Source: Trichosphaerium sp. ATCC 40318
Lineage: Eukaryota; Protista; Tubulinea
Reading direction: 5' to 3'
Length of the DNA stretch: 64,000 bases
NCBI GenBank assembly: GCA_038496445.1
Contig: JALMLS010000072.1
Span: 1-64,000 of the forward strand
The translations under genes were made by a program, and so were the position numbers. Positions 25,568-48,514 of the stretch are shown here, one piece after another. The notes below the pieces were generated by a model. That model was given only the letters and a program-made list of their open reading frames with translations. It was not told where the DNA came from and did no database searches. Position 1 is the stretch's first letter. The number at the start of each line of letters is the position of its first letter.

Positions 25568-26844
25568 TTATATTTGTTTGCCTTCCCTATCGAAGCGTTT
25601 AACATGGCCTATTGCGTGCCCACCTTCCATTGACGCTTGTCTTTTTAATTGTCCATTGCTATGCCACTCTTTGCATTCGCCGTGTTCTCTACCTTGCTTC
25701 ATCATGTAATGCTGCTGCAATTGTCCGTTGGCGTACCACCTAAATCAGGTAATGAGTAAACAGTATAGGTTGGTTCTTGGTTGATTCTCAATTACCTCTT
25801 AAATTCTCCGTTCACTTCACCATCCGTTAACGTACATTCTGAATCCAATTGGCCATTCTCATGCCAAGTTTTGCAGAGACCAAAATACTTGTTTTGTTGC
25901 ATTGACTTTTCGGATCTCAATTGTCCAGATTCGTACCTTGTAGAATAAATAAAAAAAAGCACGTGAGCAATTTCAAAAAAAAACCATTCTAGGTACCATT
26001 CCTTTAGAATGCCATGGTATGCGCCATCGACCATTGTGCAAGCCAACTTCATGTTGCCATTAGAGTAATATTCATTCAAGTCACCGTGATGCTTTCCATT
26101 CGTTATAGTGCAGTCAACTGCCACTTGCCCGTTTCTATGATAGTCCCTGCACTTGCCATGCTTTTCTCCGTTTTGTAGCGTGTGTTTATATTGCACCTGT
26201 CCGTTATCATACCATTCTGTAAGTTGTCCATGGTGCTTACCGTCTTTCATAGTACATATTACTGCCAGTTTGCCATTTTTGTGCCAGTCTTTAGCCTCAC
26301 CATGTTTCTGGCCGTTTACATAGTAATGCAGGTACTTAAGTTGGCCATTATCATACCACTCCTTTAGCTGTCCGTGTTTTTTGCCCATTTGCATCATACA
26401 TGTTGAAGACATTTGTCCATTGTCGTACCACCCTTTGAATTCTCCATGATAGGCTCCTTGGTGCATGTTACATTGTACAATGAGGTTACCGGATGTGTTC
26501 CACATTTTCATTATCCCTTGTTGCTTGCCATCCTTCATGAAGCACTCAAGGAACACTGATCCATTCCTGTACCATTCTTTATGCTCTCCGTTTTCTTTAT
26601 TATCCTTCATGAAACACTGACACCGGATTGGACCGGCGTTGTGCCATCGCATCCACAACCCTGATTTTTGCATTTTGGAGTCAAAGTGAGTGCTTAACGC
26701 TGCCCTTTTTGATAGCATGTGGTACTTTTTGAATGTTTCCGCGCTGTAGGTACATATATGACGTTGTATATCTTTAGGTAACGAGATTAATGTACAATCG
26801 GCATGCATACGGCCCAACTGTTGATTGCGCTTAGCGGTAGACAT
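25568..26844 (-). CDS. F-box-like plus MORN-variant (YwqK-like) repeat protein, 3 exons
   Basis: N-terminal LISLPKDIQRHICTY, then tandem ~24-aa repeats of the form GxxHGxxKEWYDNGQL. Confidence 0.8.
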
Positions 26845-36190: not shown

Positions 36191-37572
36191 TCCACGGTGA
36201 GGACTATTTTATCATTCGGTTGGACATCAGGGAGTACCTGTAGGTCAGCTAGGTACAATATTTAGTAAAACCTGATTCTCTAGCGTATTAACGTTTTAAA
36301 AGGCGGTTTATCCAAACCGCTCTGACCTCAGGCGGCGTTGATGCGTCCTCCACCAGCAATGGTGTTGAGGTAAGAAATTTTCACGTTACCATTCATGTTT
36401 ACGCGTGTAGGACCTCCGCCTCCGCCCCTCAAGGAGATTTAAGCGACGTGTGACGCGCAAAGGCAAAATTTTGGCATCTCAACAAGAGCGCACAGAAAAA
36501 TCAGGCAGAACAAGAACACGCGTACGACGCAGGAACCCACATAACAGAGCCCAAAAAAAAGAACAAAAAGCTCTAGATGTGAACAACACAGATCAATTTC
36601 CAAAGCTCTCTGTACGCTTTCACATTGATATTATCAGCGTATACGCCCTTTTGAATCCAAAACTCGCACATCGTTCCCAAAAACCGACCATGAATTCTCG
36701 CTTATTAACGTTAATACGATTGTTAGGAATCTGAGACTATTGTATCTACAACTCCTGTTGCAACAAGCCTACAAACATACAAACAAGTACTTCAAGAGTC
36801 ACAAAGAAAGACACTCATCCTCTCTGCAACTCCTTTCAAGAAGCAACGCATGTTGGTACGTGTCCAGAAGCCAATACATAATTTTTCCATAAAAGTAAAT
36901 GAGTTTGACACGCCAATCTCAAAAACTCATTTTTGGTGACTCTTCTCCACTAACTCACCTCAGGTTGGCATAAGCAAAGTAAGAGACGAGTTTATTGCAC
37001 CAACACTTCCAGTTCCAAAAGTACAAGAAAGAATCATGCGCAAAGCGCCACGGTACAAGACATTTTTACCAAAAATGATGTATCCATTTTTTTACTAAAT
37101 TCCACCAAGTACTTCCATCACTCGTACTGTCAAGGACAAAACTTTCGTACCACTTCTTCCAGTATATCAAGCGAAACAAACAACAACACGCACATCATAC
37201 AAACAAAAAGCTCAACGTGCTGTACGCATCTATGTTTGGCCTTCACTGCTATAAATACCAATGTCTTACTTGTTGTATTAGTGGATTGCTAAGTTGCTCG
37301 CCCGTCGTGGTATTCACTTGCTTGTACCTTCATACATGTTCAATACAATGGCTCAAACAGACAAGTTGACGTTCCTTAAGAGCCCATCATCAACAAATGT
37401 AAGATTGTTTGTCTCACACGTGATATTTTTAATCTGATTTTTTTAGTCCGGTATTCTAGCGTATAGACCTAAAAATCAAACATCCAAACTTCCTTCATTT
37501 ACATCATGCTCAAGACAACTTCAAAATCAATTTCAAAACACATGGCTACCACAAACAATACTAAGCTGTTAG
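36191..37572 (+). CDS. Uncharacterised basic, low-complexity spliced ORF upstream of and overlapping hisB; start codon unresolved
   Basis: Frame stays open across 7 GT-AG introns (donors ~36253, 36370, 36612, 36856, 37053, 37222, 37399) to TAG 37570-37572. First in-frame ATG is only at ~36850. Confidence 0.55.
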
Positions 37573-38513
37573 AAGCAACAAAACTCATCCTTTGTACGCC
37601 TAAAATCTCCTTTAGTTTTTGTCCTACTGTTTGTAAAATCTAACACGTGGTCTAGCTTCCTCCGATACAGAACTAGCTGCTGTGATGACTAAACTATCAT
37701 CAAGTGATGCACTTAAACTTGTAGAAAAAGTGTCTACTGCTTCAAAAAGTAAACAGAAAAAAACAACTTTAAGAAAAGCCACTGTAGAGCGTAAGACAAA
37801 AGAGACTCAAATCAGTGTATATGTCAATTTAGATGGTATGTGATATAGGCACTCTTTTAGCGCAAATACTAAATTAGTTTACTTTTGTAGGTTCAGGAAA
37901 AAGTAAAATCGATACAGGCATTGGTTTTTTGAATCACATGTTTGATGCTTTATCTAAGCATAGTATGATCAATATTGAAGTTACTTGTAACGGAGACTTA
38001 CACATTGACGATCACCACACAAGTGAAGATTGCGCATTGGCTCTAGGATCAGCCATTAACAAAGCCATTGGAGACAAAAAAGGCATTACAAGGTTCGTAC
38101 TTTTTATTTTAGTTTCTTTGCGCCTCTCTCCCATTGAAGCTTACTTTGAATCACTAATGCATTGCTAAAGATTCGGTATTGGATTTGCACCTCTTGACGA
38201 GTCATTGTCACGTGCTGTTGTAGATTTCTCAGGACGTCCATCAGCCCACGTTGATCTCAAGTTCACCAGAGAAAAAATTGGCGATATCTCAACTGAAATG
38301 CTCACTCACGTGTTTGAGTCAATTGCTATGAACGCAAACATGACACTACATGTTGAAGTACTTAAAGGAACTAATAACCACCACAAGGCAGAATCAGCAT
38401 TTAAAGCCCTTGCCCAAGCACTGCGACAAGCTGTCGCAATTGACCCAAAAAGACTAGACCAAATCCCATCAACAAAAGGAACATTAGGAGAACAACAAAG
38501 TCAAAAACCATGA
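37542..38513 (+). CDS. hisB: Imidazoleglycerol-phosphate dehydratase with N-terminal extension, 4 exons (alternative in-frame ATG at 37506)
   Basis: RKTKETQISVYVNLDG, TGIGFLNHM, GDLHIDDHHTSED, APLDESLSRAVVDFSGRP, GTNNHHKAESAFKA, IPSTKG. Confidence 0.96.
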
Positions 38514-40459
38514 GCACAGACAAACCTAAAGGTAAATAGAGAACATTTGAATCCATTGGAATACTAACGATATTTGCGCATAGTTATTTTGGTAAAGACG
38601 TCTACGTCCAACTTGGGATCGATTATTGCTGCTTTTGAACGCTGTGGAACAACCCCAGTTATCTCAACAGATCCAAAAGATATCGAAACAGCTGATCATG
38701 TTGTTGTACCTGGAGTTGGAACAGTCGGACAAGCTATGGCCGTCATTAATGAAACAAAAGTGAACAAAGTTTTATGTGAACGCATCAGAAAGGTATGTAC
38801 ATACTCCACTTACGTTGTTTTACTAATATACTTCTTCCTAAAGGGACTTCCTTGTCTGTTTGTATGTGTTGGCACTCAACTATTGTGTAATGATAGCGTG
38901 GAGAACCCAGGAGTACAGGTAAGATTTTAATGACCATGCATTTTGAAAGAAAAGTCTTGACACGATTTAGGGCCTCGGTATTATTGATACAACAGTCCAG
39001 CGATTCCCAGATACTGTGGTTGTACCACAACAAGGATGGAACAAAGTTTACGTTGAAGGAAAGAGTAACTATATTGATGAGGATGGCTATGCGTTCTTTT
39101 CAAACTCTTTTTGCTTGAGACACAAACCTAAGGATTGGACAGTTACAATGTGTACTCACGCAGGTCCATTTATTGCGTGCATGGTACGAACACTACTACC
39201 AATAGCCCAATGTCACTAAGCATTATAATTTTAGGAATACGGTGCTATCCTTGCTTGTCAATTCCATCCTGAACTCTCTGGCACTTTCGGTTACAGCGCA
39301 CTTCGAAACTGGTTGAAAAAATCAAAATCACTCGTAAAACCGTACACTATCAGAGGCGGCGAGGATATCATAATTGCAAAAGATGATGCTTCATCAAACC
39401 TTGCAAGAAGAGTAGTGCCTTGCTTAGATGTGAGGAACGGTGTTGTAGTAAAGGGTATACACCAACTTTTATTTCCATGTTTGTATTTAATTGCTAATTG
39501 GTTTTAGGTATTAAGTTTCAAGGACTTAAAGAAGCCGGTGATCCAGCCGAGCAAGCTGCAAAATACGAAAGAGATGGTGCTGATGAGTTAGTCATGTTAG
39601 ATGTCTCTGCAACACCTGAAGGCCGTAAAACATGTACGATTTTTTGAGCTTCATTGCTTTTTCTTATTGTTGTTTAGCTCTCGAGACAATCAGGATTATT
39701 CGTGGTCAACTGTCTATTCCACTCACTGTAGGTGGTGGTATAAGGACTGTTGATAACGCACGGGCAATTCTAGAGGCTGGCGCTGATAAAGGTATGTTAA
39801 TGGCACTCAGTCTAGAAGTTGTTTAACAATCTAACGCGTATTTTTTAGTATCCATCAACACAGCTGCTGTGAGAAACCCTCAAATTCTTACTGACCTTGC
39901 ACACCAATTCGGTCGTCAATGTACTGTTCTAGCCATTGATGCTTCGTCTTGTGGTGAGGGCAAATGGGAAGTTGTTGTCAAGTCTGGAAAAGAACGTACA
40001 GGCATGGATGTTATCGAATGGGCAAAATCTGCTGTAGAAAAAGGAGCAGGAGAGATCTTGCTTACTTCCTGGGACAGAGATGGCACCAAACAGGTACTAC
40101 AAAACGCCCTCACCTGTGTAATAATATTCGATGATAGGGATATGACATTGAGCTACTTAATGCTATGCGCAAGGCCGTGAGCGTTCCAATTGTTGCATCA
40201 GGTACAATTCTTTGAATGTTGTTAGTATACTGTTTTGTTTACGCTTTATCTTTAGGTGGTGTTGGAAACCCAAAAGATCTAGTCGATGGACTTAAAGCAG
40301 GAGCCGATGCTGTATTAGCTGCATCAATTTTTCACTACGGCGAGTATACGCCAAACCAAGTTAAAGATATTCTACAAAAAACCCATAAAATCAGACACGT
40401 TAATGTACGGTTGCTTTATTAATAACTCTTATCAACTAAAACTATTATTTCAGAAATGA
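38510..40459 (+). CDS. hisHF: Fused imidazole-glycerol-phosphate synthase HisH-HisF, 11 exons (ends at 40422 if the last intron is retained)
   Basis: HisH: [29 protein letters not shown]. Linker, then HisF: [60 protein letters not shown]. Confidence 0.95.
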
Positions 40460-42246
40460 TAGTTCCTTCAATCAGTATTAAAGGTGGAGAGGCTTTACAG
40501 CTGTCAATTGACGATCCAAGCGTCGTATTGGTAAATGCTGGTGATCCAGTTCCTCTAGCAAAGAAGTATGGTATTATTGGCGAAATAACAGTTTTTGACT
40601 TGGATGCTTCCATGGGCACTGGATCAAACGAATCGACCATCAAATCATTACTCAAGCTTGCAAATTGTAGAGTAGGAGGTGGTATTAACACTGTGAAAGC
40701 AGGTATTGATTGGTTGAACGCTGGAGGTAAGCAACTCGTTTGTTGTTGGCCAAGAGTACTTATGTTTTCTGTAGCCTTCAAGATAATTCTTGGGACCGCA
40801 TCAACTCCTGAAATTCTTGCAATGCTTCCTAAAGATAGAGTGGTCTCATCTTTAAAAGTAATGACAGGAGAAAATGAGGTCAGCAGCTGGAAGACTGATG
40901 ACGGCAAACTCTTTATTGAAAAACTTGAAGAACTCAAACCGTTCGTCTCTGGATTCCTCGTTACCTTTATTGAACACGAAAGGCGTATGGAAGGTATGGC
41001 CATAAATAAGTACAGCGCATTGTTCTAAGTTACATGATAAAGGGATTGATGTCACAATGGTGAGAAAACTGAAAGAAGCTGTTGGCAAAGCTCATGAATT
41101 AACTGTCGCTGGAGGCATTTCATCTGTTGGTGAAGTCAAATCTCTTGCTGACATGAAAGTACGACAATACAGTCTCGACGAAGACGCTTTTACTAAATTA
41201 TATTACTTTTTAGGTCAAAGCTCAAGTCGGTATGGCCATACACACAGGAAAGCTAAACCTAGGCGAGGCGTTTGGTAGCCTTATCATTTCTGATCGTCCG
41301 GATGGTTTGTTCCCAACCGTAGTCGTTAATGAGTACCAGCAAGCTCTTGGTTTTGTGTATTCGTCGAAAGAGAGTATAGCAAAAGCCGTGGAGATGCAAG
41401 CAGGTGTTTACTGGTCTAGAAAACGAGGACTTTGGATTAAGGTAAAAATCATTGATTCAAATTTTCATTGTTGACATCATTCAACTGCAGGGTCTCACTT
41501 CTGGTGCCACGCAAAAGCTCATTAGTATAAAAACCGATTGTGATACCGATTCTCTATGCTTTGTAGTCGAACAAAAAGGTACTAAAATAGCCCAAGAGCC
41601 TTCCTCGGAAACTCATCCCTTTTGTAGACCCTGGATTTTGTCACTTGAACAGAATGTCATGTTTTGGTCGTGGTACTGGTTTACCAGATCTCATGAATAC
41701 CCTAGAAAACAGGTACCATCATTAACAAGTTTAGTATCACATTAACATGTTTTTAAGGAAAATAAACGCACCCAAGGGATCGTACACAAAGAGACTTTTC
41801 GATGACCCTAAACTGCTTGATGCCAAAATTTTGGAAGAAGCCAATGAACTTATTGATGCTACAGAGAGAGAAAATATGATCGGTGAAGCCGCCGATGTTA
41901 TATACTTTACACTTGTCAAATGTGCCAAACACAACATTTCGTTGACGGACGTGGAAAAAGGTGCGGAAATTGTTTTGGAATTTTTTTTTGCGGAGAAATT
42001 TTGTCCCTGGTTTCTTTCTGACGTAACAATTTGTACCACACCATACGAGGCGTAGTTTGACTAGATTATCATTAAAATAGTCGTATGATGGGCTTTTAAA
42101 GGCGGTTTTAAAGTATTTTATCTAATAAGCCTTTAGAACTCGACAGACGCGCTAGAAAAGTATCTCGTAGAAAAGGAGACGCTAAGGAACATATTGTAAA
42201 ACAATTAGAAGCACACAGAAAACAACAACAAGAAGAATCTAAATAA
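40456..42246 (+). CDS. hisIE: HisA-like TIM barrel fused to PR-AMP cyclohydrolase (HisI) and PR-ATP pyrophosphatase (HisE), 8 exons
   Basis: TIM barrel: DLDASMG, RVGGGI, ILGTA, TVAGGI, VGMAIHTG. HisI: YWSRKRGLWIKGLTSG, DCDTD, FCH, SCF. HisE: GSYTKRLF, KILEEANEL, EAADVIYF, RRKGDAK. Confidence 0.93.
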
Positions 42247-44973
42247 TGGCAACAAGAAACCTTAAAATCGTTACAGAAAGCGACGTAGCTGCTATTAGCA
42301 CTAAAACTGATCCTGTCAGCCCAGAAACACTCGGTAAAGCCGCACAAATCGTCGCAGACGTTCGCAAACGTGGTGATGAGGCTTTACAAGAGTATGCCGT
42401 TAAATTTGGAGACCTGAAGGTATGAATCACTTTCAAAACGCTGTGCGTTCACACTTTTCGCTAAACATCGTCATCAGGAAGGCGAAAGCATGATAGTTCC
42501 AAAGGAGGACCTCAAAAAAGCCTTTGAAGCTCTAGACAAAGAACAACAAGAAATGTTGAATCGCGTTGCCTCGAGGTATTTTTTTGGCCTACTTTTTTTG
42601 AATTGAAAGTTTTTTTCAAATGTTTCCACGTGTCTAACCCTTGTTAAGGATCAGAACCTTTGCGCAAGCACAGAGAAGTAGTGTCACAAACATGACACAA
42701 CAAATTGACGGTGGAAGCGCTGGGCACTATGTTGATCCAGTAGAATCTGCCGGTTGTTATGCACCAGTACGCCATTATTCATTTTTAATTGCTCGAGTCT
42801 AATGTACGATTAAGGGTGGTCGCTACCCATTGCCTTCGAGCGTGTTGATGACATGTATTACCGCACGTGTTGCTGGCGTTAAGAACGTTTGGGTCGCTTC
42901 TCCAAAGCCACAACAAATCACAAAGGTAGGCTATTTTAAATCAAGTCTCAGAGTCTTACTTTCATTAGGCTGCTGCATATGTCGCTAACGCAGATTCTCT
43001 TCTTTGTGTTGGCGGAGCTCAAGCCATCGCTGCTTTGGCTCACGGCACAGCTACCATTCCAGCATGTGATGCAGTAGTAGGACCAGGAAATGCTTTTGTA
43101 ACTGGTACACACTTATTTTTCTCATTACTGGATTAATTTCTGTTTTAGCTGCCAAACAACTCATTGCTGGTAACGTTGCTATCGATACCTTGGCTGGGCC
43201 TTCAGAATGCTTAGTAATCGCTGACGAACAGGCAAACCCAGCAATCGTAGCTGCTGACCTTTTGGCTCAGGCTGAACACGATACTGACGCTAGAGCTATA
43301 CTCATTGCGCTTTCTCAAAAAGTAGCTGATGATGTTGACGCAGAGATCTCAAAGCAACTCGAGACCCTCCCTACAAAAGAAGTCGCTGCTGCAGCTTTAA
43401 AGAACAGTTTCTGTCTTATTGCTAAATCAAGAGAAGATGCTGCCAAACTCGCAAATCAAATCGCCCCAGAGCACTTAGAACTCCACGTTCAGCGTACACA
43501 CGAACTTGAGCGCAAAGTACAACACTACGGTGGTCTATTTATCGGTCAAGGCGCAGGCGAAGTCCTTGGTGATTACGGTGCTGGTCCAAACCACGTACTA
43601 CCAACACGTGGAGCAGCACGTTCTTCTGGCGGTCTATCAGTTTTCACATTTTTGCGTATTCGCACGTGGATGAATATTACAAATCTTCATGGTACGTAAA
43701 TTCTCCAAGAGTTTTGGTTTCTTCGTATGCTTTGTACTGGATTAACGTGTTTCCTTTAGCTGCAGAAAAGCAAATTAACGATAGTGTTATGCTTGCTCGC
43801 TTAGAAGGTCTTGAAGGACATGCTAGAGCCGCTGAGAAGCGTCTAGAACTCGTTAAAGATGAAAGTGTTCTTCCACCATCTGTTCTCAGAATGGGACTAC
43901 CAAAGGGAAGAATGGAACAACAGCTCATTAAGATTCTAGGAGGTACGCTTGTTTTTGAGTTTGTAGCGGTGTTTTTTTCCCTTTTTCTAAGATTGGATTG
44001 TAGACGGCGGTATTAAGATTGAAGTACCACCTAGAGGTTACAGACCTTCTATTTCACTAGACGGTGTTGATGTAAAGATGCTCAAGCCTAGAAATATTGT
44101 TGAAATGATCTCCGTCGGTTCTCGTGACGTTGGTTTTAGTGGCAGAGATCTTGTCGAAGAATTAAATGCTAATGTCAAGTTTGAAATGGATCTCAAGCTC
44201 AACCCAGTCAAGATAGTAGCAGCCGCACCTCATGATTTATTGGTTCAAGACGCAAACGCACCACATGGATGGAGACTTAAGGACTTGAATAGAGTACGTT
44301 TCTACTCAACAATTTTGAGATACTAATTTTACTATTTTTTAGCCATACCGTGTTGCCACTGAATACACTACCATTACTGCAAAGTGGATTAAAGAAAACA
44401 ATCTCAATGCTACCCTCGTACACACTCGTGGATCTACCGAGGTGTTCCCACCAGAGGATGCTGACTTTATTGTCGACAACACAGCAACTGGCTCTACACT
44501 GAAGGCTAATAAGCTAGAAATCTTTGACATCTTAATGAGATCTACTACTTGTATGTTCTCTAACGCCGAAGCTTCTGAAGACCCTCACAAGCGTAAGATC
44601 ATTGATACACTGAAATCTACCATAGAAGCAGGTACGCGAGTTACTACACACGTTTTTGTTTTCAGCAACTAAATGTTGCATTAGTTCTCACTGCTAGACC
44701 ACGCTACATGTGCGAATTCCATCTTGAAGAACACAGACTCGAAAGCGCATTGGTAACACTGCCTTGCATGCGGTCACCTACCGTTCACCAACTTGTTGGC
44801 GACAAGAACGGTTACTCTCTAAGAATCTGTTCAGACATGGTACATCTCTATCTTTACTGTTAATGTCTTCAAACCTAACAAATACTTAGAACCCACACAA
44901 ACTCATCAAAGCAATTAAAAGAGCTGGAGGACAAGATATAGTCATAACTAAGCCGCTTTTCGTCATCCCATAA
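42246..44973 (+). CDS. hisD-hisG: Histidinol dehydrogenase (HisD) fused in frame to long-form ATP phosphoribosyltransferase (HisG), 11 exons
   Basis: HisD: [78 protein letters not shown]. Then HisG: [48 protein letters not shown], and a C-terminal regulatory domain. Confidence 0.93.
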
Positions 44974-48443: not shown

Positions 48444-48514
48444 GGGCCTTGCCTGGAATCGAACCAGGGCCACTTGAACCCAAATCAAGTATTTTACCAC
48501 TTAACTACAAGGCC
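48444..48514 (-). tRNA. tRNA-Pro(UGG)
   Basis: Minus strand GGCCTTG..CAAGGCC acceptor stem, anticodon arm CTTGA-TTTGGGT-TCAAG, T-arm CCTGGTTCGATTCCAGG, and a downstream T5 Pol III terminator. Confidence 0.93.

Follow-up and report, generated by a model that had tools for sequence, protein, structure and literature searches.

Stop-start overlaps in an intron-rich histidine gene cluster of Trichosphaerium, one of them formed by splicing

Introduction

How could a second protein be made from a eukaryotic RNA when its start codon overlaps the stop codon of the preceding gene, and when this overlap is found in the spliced RNA only? The question is raised by a histidine biosynthesis (his) gene cluster of the amoeba Trichosphaerium sp. 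ATCC 40318. We analyzed 64,000 nucleotides of its genome (assembly GCA_038496445.1, contig JALMLS010000072.1, positions 1 to 64,000 of the forward strand; hereafter the window), in which the genes hisB, hisH-F, hisA'-I-E, hisD-G, and hisC-HAD follow one another in this order, all on the + strand. At the boundary of hisH-F and hisA'-I-E, where hisA' denotes a HisA-like gene, an intron of 49 nt precedes a stop codon and a start codon that share nucleotides.

In bacteria, translational coupling by -4/-1 overlaps has been described (PMC10666635). How near stop and start lie to each other is one of the main determinants of the reinitiation that follows long open reading frames (ORFs), and the efficiency that depends on the TURBS, a termination upstream ribosome-binding site, falls beyond about 30 nt (PMC10275272). 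Here, we describe the junction between hisF and hisA', its RNA, and its counterparts in other organisms, and weigh how the downstream gene may be translated.

Results

The intron between hisF and hisA' is removed from the RNA

All genes of the cluster were modelled by hand from the three-frame translation. The hisH-hisF fusion gene (38510..40459, +) consists of 11 exons and ten introns and encodes 480 amino acids ending in ..KIRHVNK*. Its last large exon (40256..40404, +) ends in ..CAC GTT AAT, and its final exon (40454-40459) is AAATGA, composed of a Lys codon and the stop codon TGA (40457-40459), which overlaps the ATG of hisA'-IE at 40456-40458. Between the two lies a phase-0 spliceosomal intron (40405..40453, +) of the form GTACGG .. 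CTAAA .. TTTCAG. The A of the branch-like CTAAA is at 40439, 14 nt from the 3' end of the intron, and is followed by a T-rich tract and the acceptor CAG reaching to 40453. The mature RNA reads ..GTT AAT|AAA TGA, with the two nucleotides AA (40454-40455) between the acceptor and the ATG. If the intron were retained, HisF would end in ..HVNVRLLY* at an in-frame TAA (40420..40422, +), and 33 nt (40423-40455) would separate this stop codon from the hisA' ATG. The preliminary description, made from the DNA letters, had placed the unspliced stop at 40422, 33 nt upstream, and had claimed that the two genes meet as ATGA after splicing only; the sequence and the frame model bear this out, the bacterial-type 4-nt hisF/hisA' overlap of the window being present in spliced RNA alone. 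Splicing also deletes an upstream ATG at 40403-40405.

Three sequencing runs were found to hold the stretch, and the contigs of four runs were aligned to positions 37300-43299. The runs carried the label 'RNA?' and were taken as derived from spliced RNA, because their contigs skip GT-AG introns throughout. The joint 40404->40454, which skips 49 nt bounded by GT..AG, was observed in two of them. In run X1 it is part of a 3,975-nt contig covering hisB, the whole of hisHF, and hisA' up to 41442 with the introns removed; in run X2 it lies in a contig of 236 nt made up of 45 nt of the hisF exon and 191 nt of the hisA' exon. Both contigs hold both sides of the joint, so that the spliced junction is phased with hisF and hisA-like exons, which was the check proposed at the outset. 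In neither run was an indel or a mismatch reported at the junction. A contig retaining the intron was not seen, although contigs may drop rare isoforms of this kind; they may also merge overlapping transcripts, and they give no usable expression levels. The 49-nt intron is spliced out in the dominant RNA form, and the intron proposed from the sequence is real.

With its removal from RNA, its boundaries of the local type, and its donor, branch, and acceptor signals, the element behaves as a GT-AG intron, and it is typical of the cluster. The his cluster was modelled with about 38 introns, roughly one per 200 exon nucleotides. Their lengths range from 43 to 176 nt (n=38) with a median of 51.5 nt, and GTACG is the commonest donor (13/38).

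The spliced end of HisF corresponds to that of its relatives

The two RNA forms predict different HisF C-termini, ..KIRHVNK when spliced and ..HVNVRLLY when unspliced. In two eukaryote-like contigs carrying related genes, HisF ends in ..KSTHLMRISH* (L084) and ..VSTHQIRLSN* (L086), and in a further group it ends in ..F.VR plus one residue. In these eukaryotic relatives the conserved Arg lines up with the exonic K-I-R of the window and falls one residue short of the bacterial G-V-E-V-R, and the relatives stop 1-3 residues after this Arg, as does the spliced ..KIRHVNK. Judged from this alignment, the spliced C-terminus and not the unspliced one is the homologous end.

The unspliced end was considered as the true HisF end and was rejected: the ends of the eukaryotic relatives match the spliced form, and the Val-Arg encoded at the start of the intron follows from its donor, as any phase-0 intron with the local consensus GTACG reads Val-Arg. 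A related explanation is that the intron arose by intronization, GTACGG going back to ancestral Val-Arg codons in the conserved C-terminal sequence of HisF (..G-V-E-V-R-L*), with the unspliced end as the original, functional one and splicing as secondary or cryptic. Two observations speak for it. HMMER aligns ..HVNVR with ..GVNVR of Thermotoga HisF, and the closest bacterial junction reads GTACGGTT-ATGA (GTA CGG TT-ATGA), while the intron opens with the same eight bases, GTACGGTT. However, the Arg of the eukaryotic relatives is in register with the exonic K-I-R, three residues before the end, the donor in question is the commonest of the cluster, and both runs assembled the spliced form. We therefore regard intronization as very improbable.

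It is even harder to believe that HisF and HisA' are in truth fused in frame, as in Acanthamoeba, and that an error of sequencing or assembly conceals this. Fusions at this junction do exist elsewhere, namely in P0109 and P0260 and in Acanthamoeba (PMC6029752). However, the contigs of two independent runs match the window across the junction without indels, and their agreement makes such an error unlikely. When the sequence near the junction was inspected, no other GT/AG pair was seen by which HisF and HisA' would be joined in frame.

The genes around the junction

The downstream gene, hisA'-hisI-hisE (40456..42246, +), has 8 exons and encodes 439 amino acids up to the stop codon TAA at 42244-42246. 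The first hisA' exon matches the family His_biosynth (PF00977) with an E value of 7e-11, above the cut-off, and homologues carry PF00977 together with PRA-CH and PRA-PH; the start of hisA', Met-Ile-(Ile/Val)-Pro-Ser, is conserved among them. The proposal that the downstream ORF is hisA-like is thereby substantiated, and can be extended to a HisA-like barrel fused to HisI and HisE. On the upstream side, the last hisF exon (a 54-aa fragment) scores 20.5 bits against His_biosynth, slightly below the cut-off of 23.6, and matches HisF structures in the PDB (best E value 8e-12), so that members of the HisF/HisA TIM-barrel family (PF00977) stand on both sides of the junction. With HisH-HisF fusion proteins the HisHF model shares 51-57% identity, and its introns are removed in the RNA contigs.

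The hisF/hisA' junction is one of three in the cluster at which stop and start overlap. The gene hisB, encoding imidazoleglycerol-phosphate dehydratase (IGPD; 37542..38513, +), has 4 exons, encodes 258 amino acids, ends with TGA at 38511-38513, and lacks its introns in the X1 contig. IGPD homologues occupy the same position in the bacterial contigs L001 and L002 and in the eukaryote-like contigs L084, L086, and L088. Its stop codon overlaps the hisH-F start as ATGA (38510..38513, +). This overlap is crossed by the X1 contig piece 38172-38529, and the bacterial locus L001 has the same ATGA. At the other end, hisA'-IE overlaps hisD-G as TAATG (42244..42248, +), which is crossed by X1 record 2 and X2 record 9; contigs thus cross all three junctions. 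The hisD-hisG in-frame fusion (42246..44973, +) has 11 exons and encodes 726 amino acids.

Several further features of these genes were observed. The C-terminus of HisB (38480-38513) carries an A-rich extension of 7 residues compared with bacterial ..KGALG* and eukaryotic ..KGSL*, and this extension keeps the ATGA overlap in frame. Upstream, an ORF in the region of about 36200-37572 ends with TAG at 37570-37572 and overlaps the hisB ATG (37542) by 31 nt. By arithmetic on the record coordinates, the 3,975-nt X1 contig has about 927 spliced nt upstream of the hisB ATG, and therefore includes an upstream ORF as well. In L084, an upstream ORF overlaps the IGPD start by 34 nt, and in L088 two tightly packed ORFs precede IGPD; no sequence similarity was detectable between the L084 upstream ORF and that of the window. 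The HisD-HisG fusion (region 43760-43945 of the window) is also found in L088 (10825-13110), where it has 761 amino acids, and the HisC-HAD fusion is common to the window, L088, and L001.

Bacterial operons and the origin of the overlap

A search with the HisA' ORF returned bacterial homologues with up to 49% identity. Two of the contigs (L001 and L002) hold operons with hisG, hisC(-HAD), hisB, hisH, hisF, hisA', hisIE, and hisD, and 80 further bacterial loci (L003-L082) were collected, mostly from metagenome-assembled genomes labelled Myxococcota or Phycisphaerales/Planctomycetota. The end of HisF could be located in 67 loci, L001 and L002 included, and in 64 of these 67 hisF and hisA' overlap as ATGA or GTGA. 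Such an overlap is therefore the ancestral bacterial state of the junction. By sequence comparison, the gene order and the junctions of the window cluster descend from a bacterial-type his operon (B-H-F-A'-IE-D). These loci also make up a large family of bacterial his operons in their own right, with a HisA-like gene right after hisF and a near-universal 4-nt overlap; in some members HisH-HisF or HisA'-HisIE are already fused (e.g., Planctomycetota P0328 and P0021).

Among eukaryotes, the junction has met different fates. The top matches of an exhaustive profile search with HisA' were amoebozoan transcriptome proteins. Clastostelium recurvatum has A'-I-E-HisG (777 aa), and Protostelium nocturnum has A'-I-E-D-C-HAD (1,501 aa). 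Together with the domain order of Acanthamoeba (PMC6029752), these matches point to a host that is probably an amoebozoan. In P0109 and P0260, an in-frame HisF-linker-HisA' fusion is present. The eukaryote-like contig L084 holds IGPD, HisHF, and HisA'IE with spacers of 8 and 12 nt. L086, which adjoins an ATP10-like eukaryotic gene, has spacers of 1 nt and 5 nt and a TAATG overlap at hisA'IE/hisC. In L088 the genes are separate, with spacers of 118-322 nt and one inversion, and the D-G and C-HAD fusions are the same. In Planoprotostelium fungivorum the genes are completely dispersed and HisHF is a lone gene. As a separate observation, the HisHF TGA and the HisA' ATG of L084 (L084:2641-2658) are 12 nt apart in the same frame, and read-through would give a fusion protein.

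When the junction of L086 (AAT TAG AGATC ATG) is aligned with that of the window (AAT [intron] AA ATG), the intron stands exactly at the place of the stop codon and spacer (5-12 nt) of the relatives. This bears on the earlier proposal that the overlap survived the insertion of the intron. The first part of that proposal, an ancestral overlap, agrees with the ATGA/GTGA rule in bacteria and with a spliced C-terminus that matches the eukaryotic relatives. However, the eukaryotic relatives with an adjacent hisA' have spacers of 5 nt and 12 nt, so that the overlap may either have been kept or have been re-formed.

With the donor in phase 0 and the Met-Ile start (ATGAT.) conserved, the chance that the acceptor position yields ATGA is about 1 in 3, and at the intron density of the cluster an intron this near one of three junctions is not rare. 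A single overlap formed after splicing is consequently not improbable by itself. What goes beyond chance is that three junctions of the same cluster overlap and that they have RNA properties in common.

RNA properties of the three internal starts

The spliced RNA from hisB to hisDG (5,712 nt) was built, and its three internal starts were compared with the rest of the sequence. The 40 nt before each internal start contain 53-60% A, which places them at the 98th percentile or higher among all 40-nt windows of this RNA; at the end of hisDG, where no start overlaps, the A content is average. Upstream of the three starts, no ATG occurs for 160, 100, and 150 nt, respectively. Gaps of this size precede fractions of 0.044, 0.13, and 0.062 of ATGs, and the Fisher combination of the three gives p ~0.015. 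The stretches from -60 to +20 fold with -3.6, -0.9, and -2.1 kcal/mol, compared with a mean of -13.9 (standard deviation 4.3), and are among the least stable 0.4-1.4% of such windows. The unspliced version of the hisF/hisA' junction folds at -8.8. After splicing, the hisF/hisA' junction has the same RNA properties as the other two junctions. Because A-rich, ATG-free, and unstructured RNA is the hallmark of translation start regions, the three internal ATGs are very probably used as starts.

Two results concern the signals known from viruses. The motif UGGGA of the viral TURBS was absent by inspection from the 60 nt upstream of each junction, the motif looked for being that of the viral type, and folding of the 5.7-kb RNA revealed no stable TURBS-like structure upstream of the junctions.

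A candidate first exon of hisD-G

X1 record 2 begins with adapter, continues with 42029-42082, and then with 42137-42388 through the joint 42082->42137. The alternative exon 42029-42082 and the 54-nt intron 42083-42136 that follows it (together 42029..42136, +) lie inside the last intron of hisA'-IE, which at 176 nt is the longest of the cluster. Read from the sequence, an RNA starting at 42029 would give hisD a leader of 163 nt without an ATG. The 42029 exon may be the own first exon of hisD-G and mark a transcript start or promoter. As evidence of a start site, the contig end is weak, because adapter-flanked contig ends also occur at seemingly random sites in the low-depth runs (39348, 39539, and 39958). 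Directly upstream of the 42029 contig start, at 42019-42026, we observed the motif TGACGTAA.

Outside the cluster, a tRNA-Pro (TGG) at 48444-48514 (-) was the sole Rfam/ARAGORN match in the window, and an intronless ORF at 25795-26844 (-) encodes 350 amino acids with MORN_2 repeats (Pfam E 2e-35); an exact look-up of this ORF gave no match.

Discussion

The explanation that we favor, at somewhat less than an even chance, is termination followed by reinitiation at the overlapping AUG on a polycistronic mRNA. The cluster would be transcribed through the junctions, and ribosomes ending HisHF at the TGA would begin again at the AUG that overlaps it, within a stretch of open, A-rich RNA. Such reinitiation would be akin to bacterial translational coupling and unlike the structured viral TURBS signal, and splicing would be needed to unite stop and start, taking them from a distance of +33 nt to an overlap. 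Retention of the intron might then act as a switch of the coupling, as was suggested at the outset. Restart has been placed within about 20 nt of the stop codon (PMC10275272), a range in which the spliced ATGA falls, the unspliced distance being 33 nt. Since TURBS-dependent efficiency drops beyond about 30 nt, and the alternatives here are 33 nt or an overlap, splicing would supply the proximity. Two findings argue for reinitiation: junctions of -4 to +12 nt persist in three eukaryote-like lineages whose proteins share only about 50% identity, and the start-like RNA properties are common to all three junctions.

Several points weigh against this explanation. Contigs can merge overlapping transcripts, so the 3,975-nt contig need not be one polycistronic molecule, and a polycistronic mRNA with many downstream exon junctions is expected to attract nonsense-mediated decay. 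The lack of the UGGGA motif and of a stable TURBS-like structure noted above counts against it too. Long ATG-free upstream stretches are required by scanning from internal starts and not by reinitiation at an overlap. The nucleotide at -3 of the spliced hisA' start is T; the other four starts of the cluster have A. The hisD-G contig starting at 42029 has its own spliced leader. L088 has the same gene set as separate genes with spacers of 118-322 nt, so tight coupling is not obligatory for the pathway. Finally, the prior for an ATGA after splicing is about 1 in 3.

In the main rival explanation the transcription units would be nested, each cistron having its own mRNA that starts inside the upstream gene and is translated by cap-dependent scanning to the first AUG. 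The overlaps would then be passive relics of an operon, and the 49-nt intron would serve both as the last intron of hisHF and as an intron in the 5' untranslated region of the hisA'-IE mRNA. We take this to be a realistic possibility, though one that is distinctly short of even and not far behind reinitiation. The ATG-free leaders of 160, 100, and 150 nt are unlikely by chance (Fisher p ~0.015), removal of the intron deletes the ATG at 40403-40405, and the open A-rich RNA is similar to that of the hisB and hisC leaders. In X1 record 2, which starts at 42029, splicing to 42137 forms the 163-nt ATG-free hisD leader, and in both L088 and Planoprotostelium these same genes stand as separate units. 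However, neither a contig start nor an alternative first exon was seen for hisA' or hisH in the RNA contigs, and the 42029 end is weak, with random adapter-flanked ends elsewhere in the low-depth runs. In addition, promoters would have to sit inside coding exons, the spliced hisA' start has T at -3, and the spacers of -4 to +12 nt in three lineages of about 50% protein identity would be left unexplained.

The same spacers bear on internal ribosome entry, in which the unstructured A-rich stretch would recruit ribosomes directly, independent of upstream termination, in the manner of a poly(A) leader or an A-rich element resembling an internal ribosome entry site. The extreme A-richness and near-zero predicted structure at the three junctions, together with the absence of a structured reinitiation element, are what it would lead one to expect. 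However, internal entry does not require the proximity of stop and start that is kept in the window, L084, and L086, and such elements are usually weak; we consider it improbable.

The position of the acceptor suggests one more alternative, namely that 40453 is mainly a spliced-leader trans-splice site that resolves the operon, the cis-splice from 40405 being a by-product. In trans-spliced operons the acceptor stands close before the downstream ATG, and here it is 2 nt before it. However, no leader-like loose contig ends were seen at 40454, 38510, or 42246 in the contig data, the other two junctions overlap without an acceptor, and to our knowledge spliced-leader trans-splicing has not been described for Amoebozoa. 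The likelihood of this alternative is slight in the extreme.

The locus can be compared with several known systems. Acanthamoeba has a single His fusion of 1,682 amino acids with seven enzymatic domains, HisH/F-A-I-E-D-G in order (PMC6029752). The enzyme domains and their order are the same as in hisHF | hisA'IE | hisDG of the window, with a HisA-type barrel between HisF and HisI and with HisG after HisD. In contrast to the one reading frame of Acanthamoeba, the window has three ORFs that meet at ATGA (spliced) and TAATG, with hisB joined upstream by ATGA. The bacterial his operons with a hisA-like gene (L001-L082) resemble the window in the order B-H-F-A'-IE-D, the HisC-HAD fusion, and the hisF/hisA' overlap; however, the inspected L001 and L002 are intronless with bacterial spacing, whereas the window has its overlap in spliced RNA only, about 38 introns, and fused H-F, A'-IE, and D-G.

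In viral reinitiation (caliciviruses and influenza B; AUGA/UAAUG), as at this locus, the stop codon of a long upstream ORF shares nucleotides with the next start codon (PMC10275272). The viral process, however, needs a structured TURBS complementary to 18S rRNA, and the RNA of the window is A-rich, unstructured, without UGGGA, cellular, spliced, and multi-gene. Cellular eukaryotic cases that have been described are a horizontally acquired bacterial operon in Wickerhamiella/Starmerella yeasts, with a discussion of bicistronic transcripts (bioRxiv 10.1101/399394), the expression of bicistrons in yeast by induced 80S reinitiation without cis-elements (PMC11952965), and polycistronic nuclear genes in green algae (PMC7896298). 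The acquired yeast operon is likewise a bacterial pathway operon resident in a eukaryotic genome, but belongs to a siderophore pathway and a different host. The green-algal genes and the induced yeast reinitiation also yield more than one protein from a eukaryotic cellular mRNA, but without being described as a whole pathway operon of the bacterial type, and their abstracts mention no junction completed by splicing.

The domain order and fusions of amoeba His proteins, bacterial overlaps, viral reinitiation, eukaryotic polycistrons, an acquired yeast operon, and inducible 80S reinitiation are thus already described. In the literature consulted, the coverage of which is incomplete, we came across no earlier description of a eukaryotic his cluster that is rich in introns and whose separate ORFs meet at overlaps, nor of an overlap completed by splicing.

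The use that eukaryotes make of operon-derived gene sets has been a question in earlier work (PMC11952965; bioRxiv 10.1101/399394), and the known outcomes are separate promoters or gene fusion. In its spliced RNA, the Trichosphaerium locus represents a third state, with separate frames, bacterial-style overlaps, and dozens of introns, one of which fills a junction. In its relatives the genes are separated by short or by larger spacers, dispersed, or fused partly or completely; these states therefore form a natural series for study. The series asks whether reinitiation after long ORFs works on cellular mRNAs without a TURBS, and whether gene fusion is the escape route where reinitiation fails. 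That the cluster as a whole is an intron-rich eukaryotic 'operon' translated by bacterial-style stop-start coupling, with one coupling site assembled only by splicing, seems to us less likely than not. If it were true, splicing, possibly with an exon-junction complex just upstream of the restart codon, would gate the amount of HisA'-IE made per HisHF, and the cluster would stand, in a living organism, midway between the his operon of bacteria and the giant fusion proteins for histidine synthesis found in other amoebae.

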